Shown: positions 5,748-19,593 of the stretch, in pieces
Layout: every line of letters begins with the position of its first letter
How positions within the stretch are numbered: the stretch's first letter is position 1
From: Vitrella brassicaformis CCMP3155
Lineage: Eukaryota > Protista > Chromerida
DNA length: 19,593 bases
Assembly: GCA_001179505.1 (NCBI GenBank)
Contig: CDMY01000793.1
Coordinates: 1 to 19,593, forward strand
Direction: 5' to 3'
The notes under the pieces: model-generated
Seen by the model: only the letters and a program-made list of their open reading frames with translations
The model's database searches: none
What the model was told of the DNA's origin: nothing
Position numbers and translations under genes: made by a program

Positions 5748-8700
5748 CTATGTTTGGTGGCTGCTCATCGTGTCCGTGTAAGCCTTGGATGGCTTGGGGT
5801 TGGTCTTGAGCTCCATGGCCAAGTGCTCACTCCCGGCGAACCGACGACGATACTCACACAAACACAACTCGACGTCCTTCTGCACACACATGACGTCACA
5901 TGACGTCACATGACGTCACACCACATGCCGCCATGGGATGGGCACAAGCAAGAGGGAGAGAGATGCTGCTCACGCGAGGAGGGTTCCGCCAGCCCCTGGT
6001 TGCGTTGACGTTCCAGTTCTTCTCGAAACGCGCCTTCATCAGATACCTGAGAGACACAGCACAAGACACAGGCATGTGTTGGATGGATGGATGGATCTGT
6101 GGTCGCTGGCTCACTCGTTGATGTCCATTATGTCGAGCTCCTCGGGGACACTGTAGCTCTGCAGCTGCGATAGGTCCCTGCACGAGCCGCGAGGTGGGGC
6201 CTTCCCATAAGAACCCTCCATCGCGCGAGGCAACTGCATTACAGACACATCAACGACATGGACGACGTACCGTTCTTCGCACTGTGCGTGTCTCCATCTC
6301 TCCTCCTCCCGTTGCCTCCCCTGCCCTCCCTCCCTCCCTCCCTCCCTCCCTGTCTCTGGTCTGTACATACCCATCTGATGTTGTGTGTGTAATTGGGGGA
6401 CTTGTACACGCCCAGCACGTGTATGTCCATCGCCAGCTCGCCGTACACGAAGGTGAAGGGCGCCTCGCCCCGCAGCACACTCTCGGGCAACATCGTCACC
6501 AGACGTGGCGCCGAGCCGCTGCACAAGTAGTAGTCTGAACCACACACGGAGAGAGGGAGGGATGCAGGGAGGGAGGCGTTTTTAGAGAGGGAGGGAGGTA
6601 GGCTGGTTGGCTTACTGGCGTCTGTTGGGCCGATGGTGCGGCCATCTGGGAAGCGAAACTCGTGATGAATCTCCGCCGAATCGTCCTGAGAGTTCGGAGA
6701 ATGAAGAAGGACGGCTGTCTCTGTGTGATGTTTCTGTGTCTATCTCACTGACAGGGTAATCGAATGTGGCCAGAAACACACGGCAGAGGTTCCACAATGT
6801 GATGTTCATCCACAGCTGGCCAGCACACAACACCGATCCATCCATCCATCCATCCATCCCCTGACGGCTGCCTCTGCTGTTCACTCACCCCTAGGTATCT
6901 CACGAGGCAAGAGCCCTCAGCAAACTGCTCGCTCACCGCCCGCACCTCCAGCACGTCAAGCGAGTTGATGACGTCCGGATCCTCAGACACACTACCACCT
7001 CCACCACCACCACCACCACCAGCCGCCTTGCTCCCCTCCCTCTGTTTCTTTTTCTCTCTCTCCGCGCCCCCTCTGCGTCTCATGAGGTGGGCGTCCGCCC
7101 CTCCCGCCATGTGTGGGATGAGTGTGTCGCTGTGTATGGCTGCGTCGGGGACAGTGCGGATGGGGTTGCTGATGGGGAAGCGCCGCTGGCGGGCCGACGC
7201 GAAGAGCACGCGGAAGCGGTCCAGCTCGCTCTCGTGCATCCCTGCAGACAGAAGGCCCGAGAGACAGAGGCAGAGAGACAGAGGGAGAGGTGTGCCGGAC
7301 TTGAGTTGCTGGTGGAGCTCTTTGTGTGTACATGGCAGTCGCTCTGCGGGCTCCCATACGGGCTCTTTGAAGCGCTTCTTCACCTGAACGAACAAACGAA
7401 CAACGAACAGGGAAGGGAAGGCACTTTCATGTGTGTGGGGTGTGGTTGAATGGCTGTGTCTCGTTGTCTACCAGGTACAGGTAGCGCCGGCCGTTCCACT
7501 TGGAATCGAGCAAACCTGAAGACACAACACAAACCACACAATACACACCAGATACACACATGACAAACACGACCACCCATCCACCGATCCACCCATCCCT
7601 CCATCCATCCATCTGACCTTCGAACATTGATTCGTCTGCATCTTCCTCCTCCTCTTCCTCCTCCATACGCTCGTCATCCTCACACTCATCCTCACCACCA
7701 ACGCCCACACCCACACCCACCAGCGGCCCTCGCTTCACCCCCTGGCCGCCCCCAGACGCCAGACGAGGGCCCCGCTTGCCCGACCCCACAGCGCGGCGGC
7801 GCTGGGTGGTGCCCATGTAGCCTGACGAGCTGCTGCTGGTCGCCTTCGGTTTGGACGCTGGGCGCGACGGGCTGGATGAGGAGGGGGTCAGCGATGGGCT
7901 CGACGTGTGACGGCGCGACCGTGACTGCGACTGGGGCCGTGGCCGTGGTGTGCCGCTCCGACCCATGCGGGCCTTCTTATGCTGTGCCTGCTCCGCCTGC
8001 GCGGCCGCCTCCAGCCGCCGCTTGGCGTTCATCTTGGCGTGGCGGTGGGCTCGGTTGTCTCTCCCCGCCCCCTCCTTCTGCCCCTGCCCCTGCCCGTCTT
8101 TGATGGACAGCCCAAACACGGCGGGCATCCTGATCGGGCCAGCCCGCAGGTCGCAGCTGACCGGGCCGGTGAGGAAGCAGCCGCGGTGCAGCGCCCGGCT
8201 GACGCGGCCCACGCGGCCGGCTCCACCATCCAGATGGAGTGGCTCCAGAGTGCCGTTCTGGGCGTGCTGCTTGACGAGGCCCCTCAGGTGCGCTGCCAGG
8301 GGGGCGGCCTTGCCGTTGCCCTTGCCCCCACCAATGGCAGCGTGGGGGACAGGGAGATGCGGGCGCTGCTGGTGCTGGTGCTGGTGGCGGTGCTGCTCGC
8401 GGTGGTGGTGGGGCTGTTTGTCAGCGTCTTCGGCATTGTGATCGTCATATGTGTGTGTGGAGAGGGAGAGGCCGTCGGGCAGTGTGCGGGAGGAGGCGAG
8501 CTGGGTGAGCTGTGAGATGAAGTCGCGGGGCGGGAGGACGTAGAGGGCACGGACGAGCCGCTCCTGCGCCTTGCGCGAGAGGTGCTGCCACACAGACGCA
8601 CAGACACGGAGATGGACACGGTGTGGTGGTGTGTGGTGGGGAATGGGTGTGTGTTGTGATGACTGACTGACCTTGGTGGGCACCGTGGGCAGGTCGCGGG

Positions 8701-11700
8701 CCCGGTTCTTCTTGCTATTGGCAGCGAGGTTGGAATTCCACCAGCTCCCCTGCAGCTCCCTGCTCACACACAGACACAGACAGACACACATAGCAGTCAG
8801 TACAGTATAGGTGCAATCGATTGCTGATATTCCTTCCACGCGTGGAGTGGAGTGGAGTGGAGGGGGGAGGGGGGCGTGTAGAAATGTCGACCTGTTGATT
8901 CTGAGTATGTCGATGGGTGCGTTGTTGTCGGGGTACATGGCCAGCCGGCCCTCATCGGTGACGATCCGACGCGACGGCGCGACACCCACACTGCCCTCAG
9001 CCACCAAACGCGGAAACTGACCAAACACCCGGAAACACACACATCCATCCATCCATCCCTCTCTCTCTGTGTGTGTGTGGGGCACTGCACCCATCCGATC
9101 CGCCCACCGACCGACCGACCCATTTGTGTAGGTTAAGCAGGCCGGCCCCCCTGTCCTCCATCCGCTGCTCGTACACGATGACGTCCTCGACGACCACGTG
9201 GAATGTGACGGCGCCGTAGACGAGCTTGAATGTGGTGCCGATGAACGACCTGTCCTTGTCGAAGTCGGGCCGGGGGCAGCGGGAGCCGCTCTGGTTCTTG
9301 TAGTCGAAATCTGAACACACACAACACACACACACACACACGCATCCACCCTTGTGTGTATGTGTGTGTGTGTGTGTGGTAGTGTTGATGGATGTGTCGG
9401 GGTGGGGGCCGGCCTGACCTGTGTGTGGCAGTATGGAGCCGTCTGGCAGCTCCCAGTGGTGCGGGACAGTGGACTGGCCCTCGTTGACCCAATGCTGAAC
9501 ACACACCCAGAGAGAGAGACACGCCTGGCGGGATGGGGGCAGCAGTGTTGTGTGACAGGGTCACCTCGACTTCATGGTCCAGCGACATGGCCAGCGCACG
9601 GTACAAGTTGTACCACGTCAAACCTGCACACACACACACACACCGCACTTAAGGAGTGAGAACGATAGATACCGTCAAGTTTGCGTGCTGTGTGTCCGTG
9701 TGTGTGGTGCTGCTTTACTTCCGAGGCATGCGATCCGTCTGACGACCCTCTGCCCGCCCACAACGGCCTCAAACTTATACATCAGCACACCGGGCTTACG
9801 CTCACCCATCTTACGATTCGCAAACCTACCGGCGCCCCCGCCGCCCCTCCTACCCCCCCTCACGCCCACATCCCCCTTGTCATTGGCCTTGTTCTCACCA
9901 CCACCACCACCACCACACACACCCTCTCCCTCTCCCTCTCCCTTCGCCACCATGCGCATCTTCCGCCGCTTGAGCCGGTCGTGTGCTGCTGCTGCTGGTG
10001 CTTCGTCGGGCCATGTGAGAGTGTGTTGCGGCTGCATCTTGATGGAGCTGACGAATGCGTGGCGGCTGTGCGTGTCTGCGAGGAATGGGGCGATGGGTTT
10101 GGCGAAGAGCTGGTCGAGCCGATGGGACAGCAGCAGGTCGACCGGGGGAGGGATGCTGTCCTGCACACACACACATACACATACACACACACTCAAGGGA
10201 AGCGTATTAGGGCCGCCTTGTGGGGTGCGTGTGGTGTGTGCTGGTGACATACATACATACCGGTAGCTGCAGAAGGCGACGCAGCGTTCTGTCACGGAAC
10301 TCTCTGACACCAACCAACCAACCAAGCAGCCAGCCAGCCATGGAAAAGGCCAATGTGGTCATGTGTGTGTGGTTTTGTGTGTGGGGTCGTGGTGCACCCA
10401 CCCATTGATTTCGTGTACGTCGACGTCGGTCTGCACACGATGGGCGGCGAGGCCATACGGCGACCCGCACGCATCCACAGAAGGGGCCGTGCCTCGAGCA
10501 CTCGACACACGGGGAACCTGCAGACACACACACACACACACACACAGACAGACAGACATGATGGATGGCTTCTCATGTGTGTATGTCAGTGACACATACA
10601 TACCCATTGCAGGTCACTGTCTGTGAAAGTGACGATGTCTGTGAGTGTGACGGTGAGCTGCAGGACGCCGAACGAGTAGCCGAAGGTGCCTCTGCGGCCG
10701 ACGGCATGTGTGCTGAGGACGTCGTGCAGACGGTGGTCGTCCGTGCACATGGAGCCGGCATTGGCCGACGAGTAGATGGCGTCAGAGAAGAAGAAACAAT
10801 GCCTATGGGCATCGTTGCCCTGCACACACCACACACACCACATCACACCCACCACACCACACGTACGTCCTGCCCTCCCCAGCCCCCTCTCTGCACCCAC
10901 CGGCCCCACCTGCATGTCAAGGGCCGTCAGGAAACACACGTGCAGCTGGTACAACGACAGTCTGGCCGGCACCGCCACCACACGACGCACCTCCCCTTCT
11001 CGAAACGACCGGCACTCGAGCAGCAGCTCCACCCCATCCTCGCACCCCACACCCGCGGGCGCATCACCACCACCCACAGCAGCCCCGCGCGGCACATCGC
11101 CTGCCGACGGGTCGTCTTGTGAGAAGTTCATGCACTCGGCACTGTGGGCCATGTCGTCACTCGAGGCGTACTTGAGGGGCGAGGGCGGGGAGGGGGAGGG
11201 GCAGATGGAGAAGGCCGGGCCAGATGGGGTCACCGTGGTCTTGGTGGTGGTGGTCTTGCGCTTAGAAGGGGGAGAGGGGGGGATGTTGCTGAGAAGACGG
11301 TTCAGACGCCCAGACGCCAGAAGCTTATGCAACTGCCATAGATCAAGACACCATCAAAGGTTTCCTGGAGCTGCCAAATCCCGCTAGCCCTTTCTGTGGG
11401 TGTGTAGGTATGTACCTGCTTCACAGTCATCTGGGGGAACACGATATCGCGGCATCCAACCAATGGCATCCCCGTCGCCGACGGACAGAAGGCCGAACGC
11501 GCCGCCTTCAAGTTGCCCATGGCCACAAACGGGACCTTGGCCGCTGCTGCCGATGGCTTAGGATTAGGCATGTGATCTGCCGCCGGACGGTCCTCCTTCT
11601 CGCGCGGCGCATCTTCTGGATCTGCCGTGGCGTGGGTGGGGAGAGGGGGAGGGGGAGGGGCCATCGGAGCAGATTCTTTGGATGGATGGCGCGGGTCAGT

Positions 11701-11721
11701 AGGTAGCTGGGAATCAGCCAT
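5748..11721 (-). CDS. About 1373-aa protein with three pRiA4b-ORF3-like (MM3350/TnpR-like) domains, one degenerate chromodomain and basic/acidic low-complexity linkers
   Basis: Exons (minus strand) 11721-11416, 11332-10910, 10819-10604, 10517-10402, 10303-10261, 10160-9719, 9623-9565, 9494-9419, 9310-9120, 9016-8892, 8759-8672, 8584-7618, 7515-7472, 7383-7332, 7241-6889, 6815-6753, 6685-6616, 6534-6371, 6233-6115, 6046-5974, 5879-5748. Total 4122 nt, all introns GT-AG, one continuous frame from MADSQL to SSHQT*. Confidence 0.85.
5891..5920. repeat. Perfect 3x 10-bp tandem repeat TGACGTCACA in the last intron of gene 2
   Basis: Read directly at 5891-5900, 5901-5910 and 5911-5920. Each unit contains the palindrome TGACGTCA. 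Confidence 0.95.
6115..6960 (-). other. pRiA4b-ORF3-like domain, repeat 3 of gene 2
   Basis: ITLWNLCRVFLATFDYPDDSAEIHHEFRFPDG...PFTFVYG...W-LPRAMEGSYGKAPP...LDIMDIN. Confidence 0.6.
7215..7640 (-). other. Chromodomain-like module preceded by an acidic tract (gene 2)
   Basis: Spliced across four exons: EEEEEEEDADESMFEGLLDSKWNGRRYLYLVKKRFKEPVWEPAERLPWMHESELDRF. It matches the chromo pattern E-x-I/L-L-D...Y-L-V-K...W-E-P-x-x-x-L...L-x-x-F. Confidence 0.6.
8892..9785 (-). other. pRiA4b-ORF3-like domain, repeat 2 of gene 2
   Basis: VRRIACLGSLTWYNLYRALAMSLD...PHHWELPDG...TFKLVYG...W-FPRLVAEGSVGVAP...IDILRIN. Collinear with repeats 1 and 3. Confidence 0.55.
10402..11026 (-). other. pRiA4b-ORF3-like domain, repeat 1 of gene 2
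   Basis: RRVVAVPARLSLYQLHVCFLTALDMQGNDAHRHCF...TFGYSFG...W-VPRVSSARGTAPSVDACGSPYG...DVDVHEIN. This resembles the family pattern I recall for PF07929: RRIxVPxxxTLxxLHxxIQxxFxWxxxHLHxF...YxYDFG...YPxxxxGxxAxPPEDxGGxxGY...FDxxxIN. Confidence 0.65.
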
Positions 11722-15228: not shown

Positions 15229-18200
15229 ATGGACGAGGTCGCACCAGCTGACGCCAGTGCGGCCGCCCCCGCTGCAGACATCGACATGCCCGATGGACCT
15301 TCTGTAGGAGCATCGGCGCATCAGGGGACGGGAGCAGCGATGAGGCGCGAGCAATCAAGTTTGGCGAGTGCGGAGAATGGTGGTCCAGATGAGGTGGGCA
15401 AGAAGGTGGGAGGTGAGCGGGGTTGCCTTGTGGAGAGGCGAGAGCATCACGGGCCCTCAACACTGGCTGCAACACGGGAAGGTGATTATGGCAGGCATGG
15501 CATGGCATGGGGGGATGGCATCATCGTATGTATGCCTGTGTGTGTGTGCGCGTCTGTGTGTATGTGTCTATCAGGGGCTTTGTCAGCGTTGCGTTGCTTG
15601 CTTGGGCAGATCGGCATTGTGTCTGGCCACGTCCCTGTGGCCTCCACAGGTACAGGCAAGATGAACAAAGACACACACCACGGCAGCAGATTGAGAGCAT
15701 CATGTGCACTGCGCCTGCCTGGCTGTCTGTCTGCCTTTGCAGATTGGCGCATCCTGTATGACGTCAACCACGACGCTTTCTGGGCTCGTCTTGTCGCCAA
15801 CGGATACGAGAACATCTATGGGTGGGAGAGGCGAATATACACATGCACACACACACACAGAGGGGCGCTGCACTCACATGACATGATGCGTGTCATGTGT
15901 GTGTGCATTTGCCCATCCATTCATCAGTCCGTATGTGACGTTGGATGACGCCCGCAAGCGTCACGACCTGGAAGCAGTCCGGTCATTCGGACCAAGGGTG
16001 AGCGGCACAGCACACAGCACACGTCACCCACTGACATACCTACCCACCTACACATCCACCTATATCTCCCTTCCTCCCTCCTTTGTTGCCTTGCTGCAGG
16101 ACGCCGCCTCCATGGCATTCGACAGCAGTGCCCTCATGGCCGCCAACATGGACCCTTCCCTTAGAGACCTGTTGATACATCCCTCGCCCTCCACACACAC
16201 CGGTGTGGATGACGAGAAGACCAGGGCGGCAGCGGCAGACGGCACTGAGGACCCACATGCACCACGACCATCGGCAGCAGCCGGGCCGTCACCGTCCACA
16301 CAAGGATTCGCCCCCGATGCGCCGCAGAGCCTTAGTGTGGGCGTCGGCACGTCAAGGTCTTCGGCAGAGCTGTGCGACTACGATGCTATCGTCATTGGAG
16401 CCGGCACTGCTGGGCTGGTCGCCGCTAGGGATTGCCTCTCACACAAGCTGACAGTGGGCGTCTTCGAGGCCCGTGACCAAGCCGGCGGCCGCATCCGCTC
16501 ACACACACTCGCCGGCACACCAACGCACTCACACCCATCATCGCAGGCCAGTGCATCATCCGCTGGCCAAGCAGCACCCACCAGTGCCGCTGGTGCTGGT
16601 GCTGGTGCAGGTGCAGCAGCAGCCAAGGAGGATGGCGTGATGGTAGAGTTGGGGGCCAACTACATCCATGGCTTGGGCGGTGTGGGGCCCGTCGATAAGA
16701 ACCCCTTGATCGGTTTGGCGAGGGCTCAGGGGCATGCCCTTGGTTGGGTGCCGGGACGGGAGGGCGTGAGCGAGCCGTGCGACATCGCCGCCTTCATGGA
16801 TGTGGGCAGCGGGACGCGTGTTGACCCCGTCAAGGTGGCCAAGTGTGACCTGGTCTTCAGGGCAGTCCTCCAAGAGATCAAACGGAGAGGTGCGTGTGTG
16901 CCAACATGACCATGACCACGGAGGCATAGCGGCACTCATCATCTTTATGCCTGCCTGCCTGTACATGTGTGTGTGTGAGTGTGTGTTCAGCTCGTCACGA
17001 GTTCAATCCGTGTCAGAAGCATCCCCTGTGGCAGCAGACGCCCCCCACCCTGATGCACAGACAGTACGACCTCGCCATCGGCAGCCAACACACCACCGGA
17101 CGGGTGTGCGCACCCGATGACCCACGCCACCACCGCCCCAACGAGCCATCTGCCGTTGCCATATCCTCCACTGTTGCCATCCGCGAGACCACCCGGCGTC
17201 ACGAGATCCAGTTGTGGAAGGACCATCAGGGCGAGATCAGCCGTCTTGTGGACACCATCCTCCGCCCCCCCACATCGAAATGGCCTGAGGCACAGCTCCC
17301 CCTTTCGTCGCACGACGCCCTTCGGCGACGCCGCGCAAAGCACCGCAACCCGCACAGACCGTCGTACGCCGACATCGCCCTTGCTACCACGAGACCAGGC
17401 AAGCTGAAGGAGCAGTTTGAGGCCCTGCTGGCCGCCACGGCTCCCCATGACTCCCTCCACATCCAGTGCGTGCACCTCTTCCGCAACAGCATCGCCTGGT
17501 GCGTCGACGTGCCAGGCAAAGACAAGGCGTATGTCCCCATCATGGTTCGCACACGCGAGAGCGCTCGGGCGGCACTCGATCGGGCGCTGTTGATCCGCGA
17601 GAGGCTGCGTCGGCAGGCCGGATGGACACCCTCGCAGCACCAGCAGCCGGCCGATGGATGGACCGGCGAGGTCGATCCCGCAGCCGTCCTGGAGGCGGCA
17701 GCAGCGCGGCCTGACGAGAGTGACGACGAGAAGAAGAACAACGAAGAGCGGCCCAAGAAGCGGCACAAGACGGCGCGCGGCGGGATCAAGGGAGAGGGAG
17801 GCGGGAAGGACAGCCGTGGGCAATCTGCAGATGGCCCGCGTGTTGCCAAACGCAAGCCGCGACGCAAGAGCAATTGGGGTGGGCCTCGCCCTGGTGCGGG
17901 CAAGTGGATAAGGCGGCCGAGGACGCCAGATGGAGACCCCCAAACCTCTGACGACGATGATGCGAACGAGTCGATGATTCTGGCTGATCGATCCGGCCTC
18001 TGGGGCGACACTCTGGTGCTGCGCAGGCGTCTGCTGCCCAAGCCTGCCAGGGGGTCGGGCCCCAGCGGACAACCGGCGAGCGGCAGTGACAGCGACAGCG
18101 AGGGGGCGGAAGGCAATGCCGTGGTGGACCAACCGGATGGTGACGATGGTGATGATGGTGACATGGAGGGTGAGTTCGGGTCGGATGACGGCCTCTCGGG

Positions 18201-19593
18201 GGACGGCTGCCTGACGAGGGCAGTGGGCGTGCGGGGGATCAAGGGGGCAGTGGCCGTGCGGGGGTGCCAGGTGGAGCTGCAGCGGCAGCGTGCGGCCGAT
18301 GGCGGCACCTCCCACATCTCCCTGAACGTCCGCAAGTCAGCGGGGCGCATGGTCAAATCGATATCATTTGACGTGCGGGTCACATCTGGCGCTTCACATG
18401 GGAAACTTCTCGCGTCCATTCAAGTAGAGCGCCCGTGGAGGCGAGAGCACATCCGTGCCGCCCTCCAGAAGGCCGTCGAAGCTAGGGACCAGGTACGTAC
18501 CGTGCGCACGCACTGGGAACGACATTTGAAGGGGATGGGGTGAGTGAGATGCATGCTGCTGTCGTTTGTGTCTTAATCTCTTTCTGTCAGCACTATTGTG
18601 GCTCCGGCAACCAGCAGACGGCTGGGGGAGATCATGACGCTCAGGCAGATGGCACTGCCATGGACATGGACCACAGTGGTGGTCTCCGACTCCGCAATCG
18701 TCTGCTGTCCAAGCCCAGCACGGCCGCCCGCGTCAATGGCGAACCCAAGTCGCCCTCCGCCAGACCCAGCAGGTCACCGTCAGCGAATGGCAGCCGCAGC
18801 AAATCGCCCCCTCTCCCGTCCTCTCCCGCCTTGCAGCATCGCGAGCAGACAGAGGACGTCGACATGGACTGCGATGACAGCAACAAGGATGAGCCTCCTG
18901 TCAACTCGACCCGCATGGACAGGGGCGACCCAGACAGCGAGCCGCCGGAGCAGAACAGCGGCAGCAAGACACCCCGTGCCGAGGGCGCTGGTCGCACGCC
19001 ACAGCCCCCCCCACCGCCAGCTTCTGCAGAGGAGAAGCCAGCAGCTGCGGGCAAGAAGCGGCGTCGTTCATCCGAGGGGGACAATGTCGAGTCACTCGCA
19101 AAGGATGAGGACGAGATGGACGACGGCGACATCCAGGGCAGGGAGGAGGGGGAGGAGGGCAATGGGGCTGACGGCACCATGACACGCGAGGAGGCCATCG
19201 CATTTGCTCGTGCGGAGTTGGATCGTCATGGCAGGCCCAAGAATCTGTGGCTGGAAGTGCCCAGCAGCAGGGAGGCATTCAGGTTGACGGTCCACTTGGC
19301 CAGGGGCACCGAGCGGCTCAGCAAGACGCTGTCGGTCTCACCCCCGTGGACGGCGCAGTCGGTCCGCGAGTCTTTGCGTGAGGCCATGGCCAACCGCGAG
19401 GCCATGATCGCCCGTCGGCATGCCATCGCCACACGGCAGGGGTCCCGCAGCCGGAGCCGCTCCAAGCGTCAATCCCGCCGGCAGTTCCATGACAACAGTA
19501 GCGACGACGGCAGCGGCGAAATGAGTGAGGACAGCAGCAGCAGGAGCGGCAACCACCACAGCAGCCAGGTCCCCGAGGAGGGCCATTCCAACA
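15229..19593 (+). CDS. 3'-truncated gene: possible SAM-like segment + N-terminal FAD-binding half of a flavin amine oxidase (LSD1/PAO family) + three AP2-like repeats in disordered sequence
   Basis: Exons 15229-15481, 15575-15649, 15743-15821, 15928-15997, 16100-16889, 16991-18492 and 18591->19593. Phases are consistent and the last exon is open to the window edge. Motifs: DAIVIGAGTAGLVAA, FEARDQAGGRIRS, VELGANYIHG, KNPLIGLA. Confidence 0.85.
16376..16889 (+). other. Rossmann FAD-binding start of an amine-oxidase domain, with an about 45-aa Ala/Ser/Gly-rich in-frame insertion
   Basis: GxGxxG, EARDxxGGR and ELGAxxIHG occur in the canonical PF01593 order. The insertion lies between GGRIRSH and VELGA. 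Confidence 0.9.

Follow-up and report, generated by a model that had tools for sequence, protein, structure and literature searches.

What is the large protein encoded between positions 5748 and 11721 of contig CDMY01000793.1 of Vitrella brassicaformis CCMP3155, and how did three copies of a domain typical of prokaryotic plasmids come to lie in it? The window analyzed here is the whole stretch of 19,593 nucleotides (nt) read from this contig, and all features of the gene described below lie on its minus strand. The domain belongs to PF07929 (PRiA4_ORF3), a large family that is widespread on plasmids and transposons of bacteria and archaea and also occurs in integrase fusions. Representatives of this family include ORF-3 of the plasmid pRiA4b, the IS1096 passenger TnpR, and y4hQ of NGR234, and its known structure is that of MM3350 (PDB 2I1S). 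The best overall explanation, which we consider reasonably probable, is that the locus is a host gene containing three PF07929 modules and encoding a multivalent nuclear binding protein. The identity and anatomy of the three-module protein, taken by themselves, are highly probable.

The coding sequence starts with an ATG at 11721, ends with a stop codon at 5750-5748, and is divided into 21 exons. Over these positions the public protein P0001 (1377 amino acids (aa), listed in the database sources as an "unnamed protein product" of V. brassicaformis CCMP3155) aligns exactly with the window; the 20 introns between its exons measure 67-137 nt and are all GT..AG, and the splice phases are consistent from the ATG to the stop codon. 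An open path between this ATG and this stop was also obtained by manual three-frame reading together with an exon finder. The sequence-only reading had proposed here a 21-exon frame of about 1373 aa hidden from the list of open reading frames (ORFs); its coordinates proved to be the exact ends of the coding sequence, its number of exons was correct, and the length is 1377 aa. No single ORF spans the locus, and all the motifs quoted in that reading lie in short minus-strand ORFs. A minus-strand ORF of 691 codons (7427-9502) is not an exon; exons 10 and 12 share its frame across a stop-free interval. This interval is made up of introns 10 and 11 and of exon 11, which is out of frame, and thus ORF lists are misleading in a G+C-rich genome such as this one (window G+C of about 53-65%).

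RNA evidence was collected from four public runs aligned to positions 5748-11721 (5974 letters). A contig of run X6 (record 22, 1331 nt), covering positions 9967-11628, skips five stretches of 83-100 nt, each of them exactly a GT..AG intron, namely 11333-11415, 10820-10909, 10518-10603, 10304-10401, and 10161-10260, with the intron ends corrected at masked microsatellites. This contig joins exons 1-6 of the minus-strand gene, and the gene is thus transcribed and spliced. The locus is a true host gene of V. brassicaformis. Further downstream, exon 12 (7618-8584) encodes a linker rich in Gly, Arg, Ala, and Ser that leads from the second repeat (R2) to a proposed chromo-like stretch and the third repeat (R3). 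The exon is free of in-frame stops over 322 codons, a state retained by 26 of 20000 shuffled sequences (p ~0.001); the other two frames of the region contain 4 and 7 stops.

The manual and the public gene models differ in three places. In two of them, the related Vitrella protein P0002, described below, backs the public donor after HEVE and the manual donor after KW, respectively. The 12 nt at 9108-9119 (encoding VGRS), which the public model counts in exon 9, were probably included wrongly, because P0002 and the other two repeats are spliced directly after Trp. The third place is the annotated intron 14 (7242-7331), which is 90 nt long, in frame, and stop-free, so that its splicing is optional for the continuity of the frame and its retention would add 30 aa. 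The intron at 10820-10909 is also exactly 90 nt, in frame, and stop-free, and its removal is proven by RNA.

P0001 is largely low-complexity and basic, and the three modules are embedded in it. The first repeat, R1 (10149-11047; aa 198-372), is encoded by exons 2-6 and passes PF07929. R2 (8582-9788; aa 493-700) is encoded by exons 6-12 and is supported by BLASTP similarity to R3, by ESM neighbors, and by P0002, while R3 (5847-6966; aa 1146-1345) is encoded by exons 15-21. In pairwise BLASTP, R1 matched R3 with E = 6e-8 over 161 collinear aa and R2 matched R3 with E = 5e-10 over 193 aa; the direct match between R1 and R2 was not significant (E = 0.3). Thus, all three repeats are homologous, being linked through R3. 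The three collinear divergent domains of the sequence-only reading are therefore present, with each of the motifs quoted for R1, R2, and R3 found in order and with two of the pairings beyond chance.

The repeats also share the positions and phases of three introns. Intron a, of phase 0, lies just past the first helix, after ..LDxx (10820-10909 in R1, 9495-9564 in R2, 6686-6752 in R3). Intron c, also of phase 0, immediately follows the invariant Trp, between W and xPR (10518-10603 in R1, 9017-9107 or 9017-9119 in R2, 6234-6370 in R3). Intron d, of phase 2, lies two bases past the invariant ..IN (10304-10401 in R1, 8760-8891 in R2, 6047-6114 in R3). A fourth intron, of phase 1, is common to R2 (9311-9418) and R3 (6535-6615) only, and is absent from R1 and P0002. 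Since the same positions and phases recur in R1, R2, and R3, the triplication took place inside an already intron-bearing gene, in a eukaryotic lineage. The modules arose by internal duplication after intron acquisition, and the earlier description of a triplicated module is borne out by these shared introns.

Membership of the modules in PF07929 was assessed by sequence, profile, and structure searches. The spliced protein matched PF07929 with E = 6.3e-7 and 29.7 bits, above the Pfam gathering score of 26.6 bits, through R1 alone (aa 215-339, profile positions 14-139 of 173). The raw ORF pieces gave PF07929 at E = 0.15 only, because the domains are split by introns. A tblastn search of 72,556 plasmids with R1 returned six weak matches (E from 0.3 to 5), five of them in PF07929 genes: four in genes annotated as "plasmid pRiA4b ORF-3 family protein", while the fifth falls within a Burkholderia tyrosine-recombinase fusion, in its C-terminal domain, which is PF07929 with E = 1e-45. 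The best matches, in bacterial plasmid PF07929 genes, were 25-33% identical. A profile built from the three repeats had a single match in PDB, MM3350 (2i1s), at E = 1.2. In the ESM atlas, 96 of the 100 nearest clusters carried PF07929 for R2 and for R3 separately, with scores of 0.90-0.91 and 173-181 shared features (0.91 and 173 for R2).

Comparison with bacterial members revealed both kept and lost features. The repeats have the same collinear order as PRiA4_ORF3, and, in the alignment, all of them keep Arg in the first strand, Leu in the first helix, His in the H-x-F motif, a G-S pair, and two Pro located before and within the C-terminal loop. Identity to the bacterial members is 16-22%. 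Typical family members carry a W-R-R strand, an L-H helix, G-W..H-L-x-F, Y-x-Y-D-x-G-D-x-W-x-H, and P-x-C..G..(C/A)-P-P-E-D-x-G-G. None of the three repeats retains the hallmarks G-W, the block Y-x-Y-D-F/M-G-D-x-W-x-H (D-x-G-D-x-W-x-H in its shorter form), and P-E-D-x-G-G, apart from a vestige (P-S-V-D..G..Y-G) in R1. These losses make the repeats a derived subgroup rather than typical PF07929 members. Unlike other members, the Vitrella protein is eukaryotic and intron-rich, and it has three copies in a chain of 1377 aa with long basic linkers. A metal site formed by Cys and His residues invariant in bacteria was also considered as a loss in Vitrella; this candidate was dropped, as MM3350 itself does not have those Cys. 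In our overall reading, R1, R2, and R3 are all real, strongly derived PF07929 members, and a prokaryotic origin of the module is plausible, judging by its best matches in bacterial plasmid genes.

A word-indexed search with the whole-length protein revealed one further protein, P0002 (830 aa), encoded in Vitrella contig CDMY01000833 (L004:6001-9732) and having one R2-type domain. This domain is 75% identical to R2 over 247 aa, and the two domains have a ratio of nonsynonymous to synonymous substitution rates (dN/dS) of 0.20, with dS of 0.82 over 241 codons; thus, the R2-type domain is under purifying selection. Five of the six intron positions are common to P0002 and R2. The phase-1 intron of R2 is cleanly missing from P0002, which has an intron of its own, 80 nt long, 17 codons further on (L004:8305-8443, compared with 9311-9418 in the window); this points to intron turnover between the two paralogues. 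Intron 6 can still be aligned between them, with about 77% identity. P0002 differs from P0001 by its single domain, by its N-terminal half, where a unit of about 50 aa occurs twice (BLASTP, E = 7e-6), and by having no chromo-like stretch; it ends about 125 aa past its domain. Its gene adjoins Vps54-like and Arf-like genes. To judge from this paralogue, P0001 is evidently not unique in its genome. No protein with the architecture of P0001 was found described in the literature searched, in agreement with the earlier statement that none was known, and no functional study of PF07929 was found there either.

Clues to function come from bacterial relatives and from the linkers. PF07929 proteins are passengers of Mutator-type bacterial transposons of the p-MULT group (PMC3942029). 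In a plasmid of Martelella sp. NC18 (L001:2941-5197), a PF07929 gene of 220 aa lies directly upstream of a transposase of the ISKra4 family (Mutator-type), an adjacency that matches this published association (PMC3942029). In the Burkholderia pyrrocinia plasmid p2327 (L003:3-2474), a single protein combines DUF3701, the Phage_integrase catalytic domain, and the C-terminal PF07929 domain already mentioned, and PF07929 is thus physically tied to a DNA recombinase. Other bacterial fusions of PF07929 include the helix-turn-helix (HTH) domains LexA and Fe_dep_repress, as well as SEC-C. In P0001 itself, the linkers contain 16-17% Lys and Arg. Of the basic tracts resembling a nuclear localization signal (NLS) that had been pointed out from the letters, KRRKMR was found at aa 432 and KRR-x12-HKKAR at aa 887-905 (basic tract at 7973-8035, aa 883-903), the latter fitting the classical bipartite pattern as a regular-expression match only.

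The DNA-linked bacterial fusions, the bipartite NLS-type pattern, and the Lys/Arg-rich linkers together suggest a non-catalytic, multivalent nuclear binding protein. In the mechanism proposed here, each module would be a strongly diverged PRiA4_ORF3/MM3350-like member with a beta-grasp-type core and a C-terminal extension. Having neither the YDFGD nor the PED-GG motif, the modules would probably be non-catalytic and bind a protein partner or DNA. Carried on flexible basic linkers, they could make the protein a multivalent nuclear scaffold or a transcription-associated factor. A more specific role in binding nuclear DNA or chromatin is a tentative suggestion, derived from the NLS-like tracts, the DNA-linked bacterial fusions, and a resemblance in fold to SNAPC3.

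SNAPC3 (SNAP50) works in the nucleus as a subunit that contacts DNA (PMC9652321, PMC9758055). The likeness of the modules to its core (PF12251; PDB 7XUR chain B and 7ZX8 chain b) is one of fold only: at the sequence level, no match between PF07929 and PF12251 was found in either direction, and the two structural zinc sites of SNAPC3, as well as its lasso and wedge parts, are absent from the Vitrella protein. One bacterial cluster in ESM, from Chloroflexota, has matches to both PF07929 and PF12251. All fold neighbors other than MM3350 and SNAPC3 are interaction domains of ubiquitin-like, RA, or FERM type. One could go further and propose that prokaryotes have, in the PF07929/MM3350-like domain, their equivalent of the core by which the eukaryotic promoter factor SNAPC3 contacts DNA, and that a copy acquired horizontally by chromerids gave rise to a small family of nuclear DNA- or chromatin-binding proteins, including the triple protein, an AP2/Tudor-linked paralogue, and others. 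We consider this proposal unlikely.

A number of results weigh against the reading of P0001 as a three-module PF07929 protein with a nuclear role. For the gene itself, the RNA validation suggested from the sequence was achieved in part: exons 1-6 are joined by the X6 contig, and for exons 7-21 no junctions were found in the four runs. The three runs other than X6 have no splice junctions at annotated introns, and contigs of runs X5 and X2 pass unspliced through such introns. For the family assignment, the pRiA4b-ORF3-like identity claimed for each repeat holds for R1 when profiles are applied repeat by repeat; R2 and R3, scanned alone, gave no Pfam match at E ≤ 1, so that the PRiA4_ORF3 model leaves them undetected, and they are attached to the family by internal homology and ESM. 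With a hidden Markov model (HMM) of 120 close bacterial members, R2 and R3 scored no better than shuffled sequences, and R1 was marginal (6.4 bits, reached by 1 of 500 shuffles). A comparison of the four Vitrella domains with 20 bacterial members by hhalign counts on both sides: the alignment runs collinearly through 109 columns and has an E value of 0.0026, which speaks for the family, and its probability is only 11.6%. The AlphaFold2 (AF2) model of R3 has a mean predicted local distance difference test (pLDDT) value of 67; in residues 1-70 and 81-110 the values are 74-94. In Foldseek, this model has 2i1s as its only PDB match below 1e-3, and it also matches y4hQ in Swiss-Prot and pRiA4b-named clusters in the AlphaFold database and the atlas. 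The model behind all these matches was built on an alignment of 24 rows, 20 of them bacterial PF07929 proteins, and the match to MM3350 is for that reason partly circular.

The reach of the family is also narrow in the searches made. A phmmer search with R1 (a stop-free query composed of exon 2, intron 2, and exon 3) against 1.84 billion representatives returned P0001 itself only, and the word-indexed searches returned P0002 only with the whole protein and nothing with a four-row repeat profile. Thus, no relative was found outside Vitrella, in searches that were length-windowed and of which the sole exhaustive one used R1, R3 being the better query. AP2 and Tudor domains in P0002 were not confirmed by Pfam or PDB searches, with a Tudor-like start at Pfam E = 0.19 only. 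As for nuclear localization, the bipartite pattern is a regular-expression match that lies within a basic low-complexity linker.

The last of these adverse points concerns the chromodomain that the sequence-only reading had listed along with the repeats, which was not confirmed. The proposed chromo-like stretch (7216-7654; aa ~1010-1062) is encoded by the end of exon 12, exons 13-14, and the start of exon 15. Its residues ~1016-1053 read like a chromodomain core, in that the motif ..LLDSKWNGRRYLYLVKKRFKEPVWEPAERL.. recalls the core Y-L-V-K-W-K-G ... W-E-P of PF00385. PF00385 was carried by 58 of the 100 ESM neighbors of the stretch, with scores of 0.85-0.87, below the tool's threshold of 0.9, and this sub-threshold lead is its sole support. 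No Pfam Chromo match was found at E ≤ 1 over aa 980-1090 or at E ≤ 10 over aa 1003-1075. In phmmer searches of PDB, no chromodomain chain was found with the second half in either of its splice variants. A single-sequence AF2 model was all-helical, with a pLDDT of 52, and unusable. Two of the three positions that we take, by eye, to correspond to the aromatic cage of HP1 are occupied by Ser/Met and Lys, which may serve as a lead only. Since intron 14 falls inside the would-be C-terminal helix, the exact sequence of the stretch is uncertain; retention of this intron would put its 30 residues inside the stretch. The chromo-like stretch would be at best a degenerate relic and is not to be taken for a methyl-lysine reader.

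The unconfirmed chromodomain lends some weight to another view of the same anatomy, in which the beta-grasp-type modules serve as cytoplasmic or organellar adaptors between proteins and the basic tracts are mere low-complexity linker. The interaction domains among the fold neighbors beyond MM3350 and SNAPC3 point the same way, and the literature searched assigns no function to PF07929. However, the bipartite NLS-type pattern and the Lys/Arg-rich linkers, together with the fusion of bacterial members to a DNA recombinase and HTH domains, favor a nuclear protein, and we regard the non-nuclear adaptor as rather unlikely. It might also be argued that two or three adjoining genes, one for each repeat, have been joined in the public 21-exon model through linkers misread as coding. 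Such an artefact would fit the RNA junctions being confined to exons 1-6, the low complexity and lack of conservation of the linkers, and the single-domain P0002 ending so soon after its domain. Nevertheless, it is improbable, given that the RNA contig reaches exon 6, an exon that continues uninterrupted into the sequence for the first strands of R2, that exon 12 stays open throughout, and that splice phases agree along the whole gene.

The transposons and plasmids on which bacterial relatives ride, and the multiple copies of the family in the Vitrella genome, could instead suggest that the gene travels as a passenger or accessory of a eukaryotic mobile element, either active or so until recently, and has not been domesticated. 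Yet the larger ORFs of the window yielded no transposase or integrase domain, the P0002 gene stands beside ordinary Vps54-like and Arf-like genes, and both the low dN/dS and the many positionally conserved introns speak for a host gene, which makes such a passenger very improbable. Finally, the likeness to PF07929 might be no homology at all, and the modules a beta-grasp domain peculiar to this lineage, its weak scores being due to chance. The absence of direct HMM matches for R2 and R3, the missing YDFGD and PED-GG motifs, and the partly circular structural support would be expected under this interpretation. Against it stand the score of R1 above the curated Pfam cutoff over 125 collinear residues, the concentration of the R1 plasmid matches (five of six) in PF07929 genes, the independent assignment of R2 and of R3 to PF07929-dominated ESM neighborhoods, and MM3350 as the only PDB sequence match of the repeat profile. 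A chance likeness is accordingly extremely improbable. The host gene with three PF07929 modules remains the explanation that we prefer.

Other parts of the window contain fragments of further genes. The plus-strand ORF at 15890-16909 has N-terminal matches to NAD_binding_8 and Amino_oxidase (E = 1e-10 and 1e-7, respectively) and fits an LSD1-like gene. The next ORF, at 16969-18543 (524 aa), has no Pfam match. At the window start, the plus-strand ORF at 28-663 has weak matches to the Cys-rich domains Ephrin_rec_like and NCD3G (E of about 1e-4 to 1e-3) and is part of a receptor-like gene.

For the PF07929 family, a eukaryotic, intron-bearing, and triplicated version under purifying selection indicates that a host protein can take up this fold as a repeated module. 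The Vitrella repeats provide a contrast set of kept and lost features, PED-GG and DFGD being dispensable in them. The resemblance to SNAPC3, together with the recombinase and HTH fusions, suggests a testable role in binding DNA or a partner; if the modules did prove to be counterparts of SNAPC3, this would be the first functional handle on a large plasmid and transposon family of "unknown function". For the biology of chromerids and apicomplexans, P0001 and its paralogue would represent a candidate lineage-specific family of nuclear factors.

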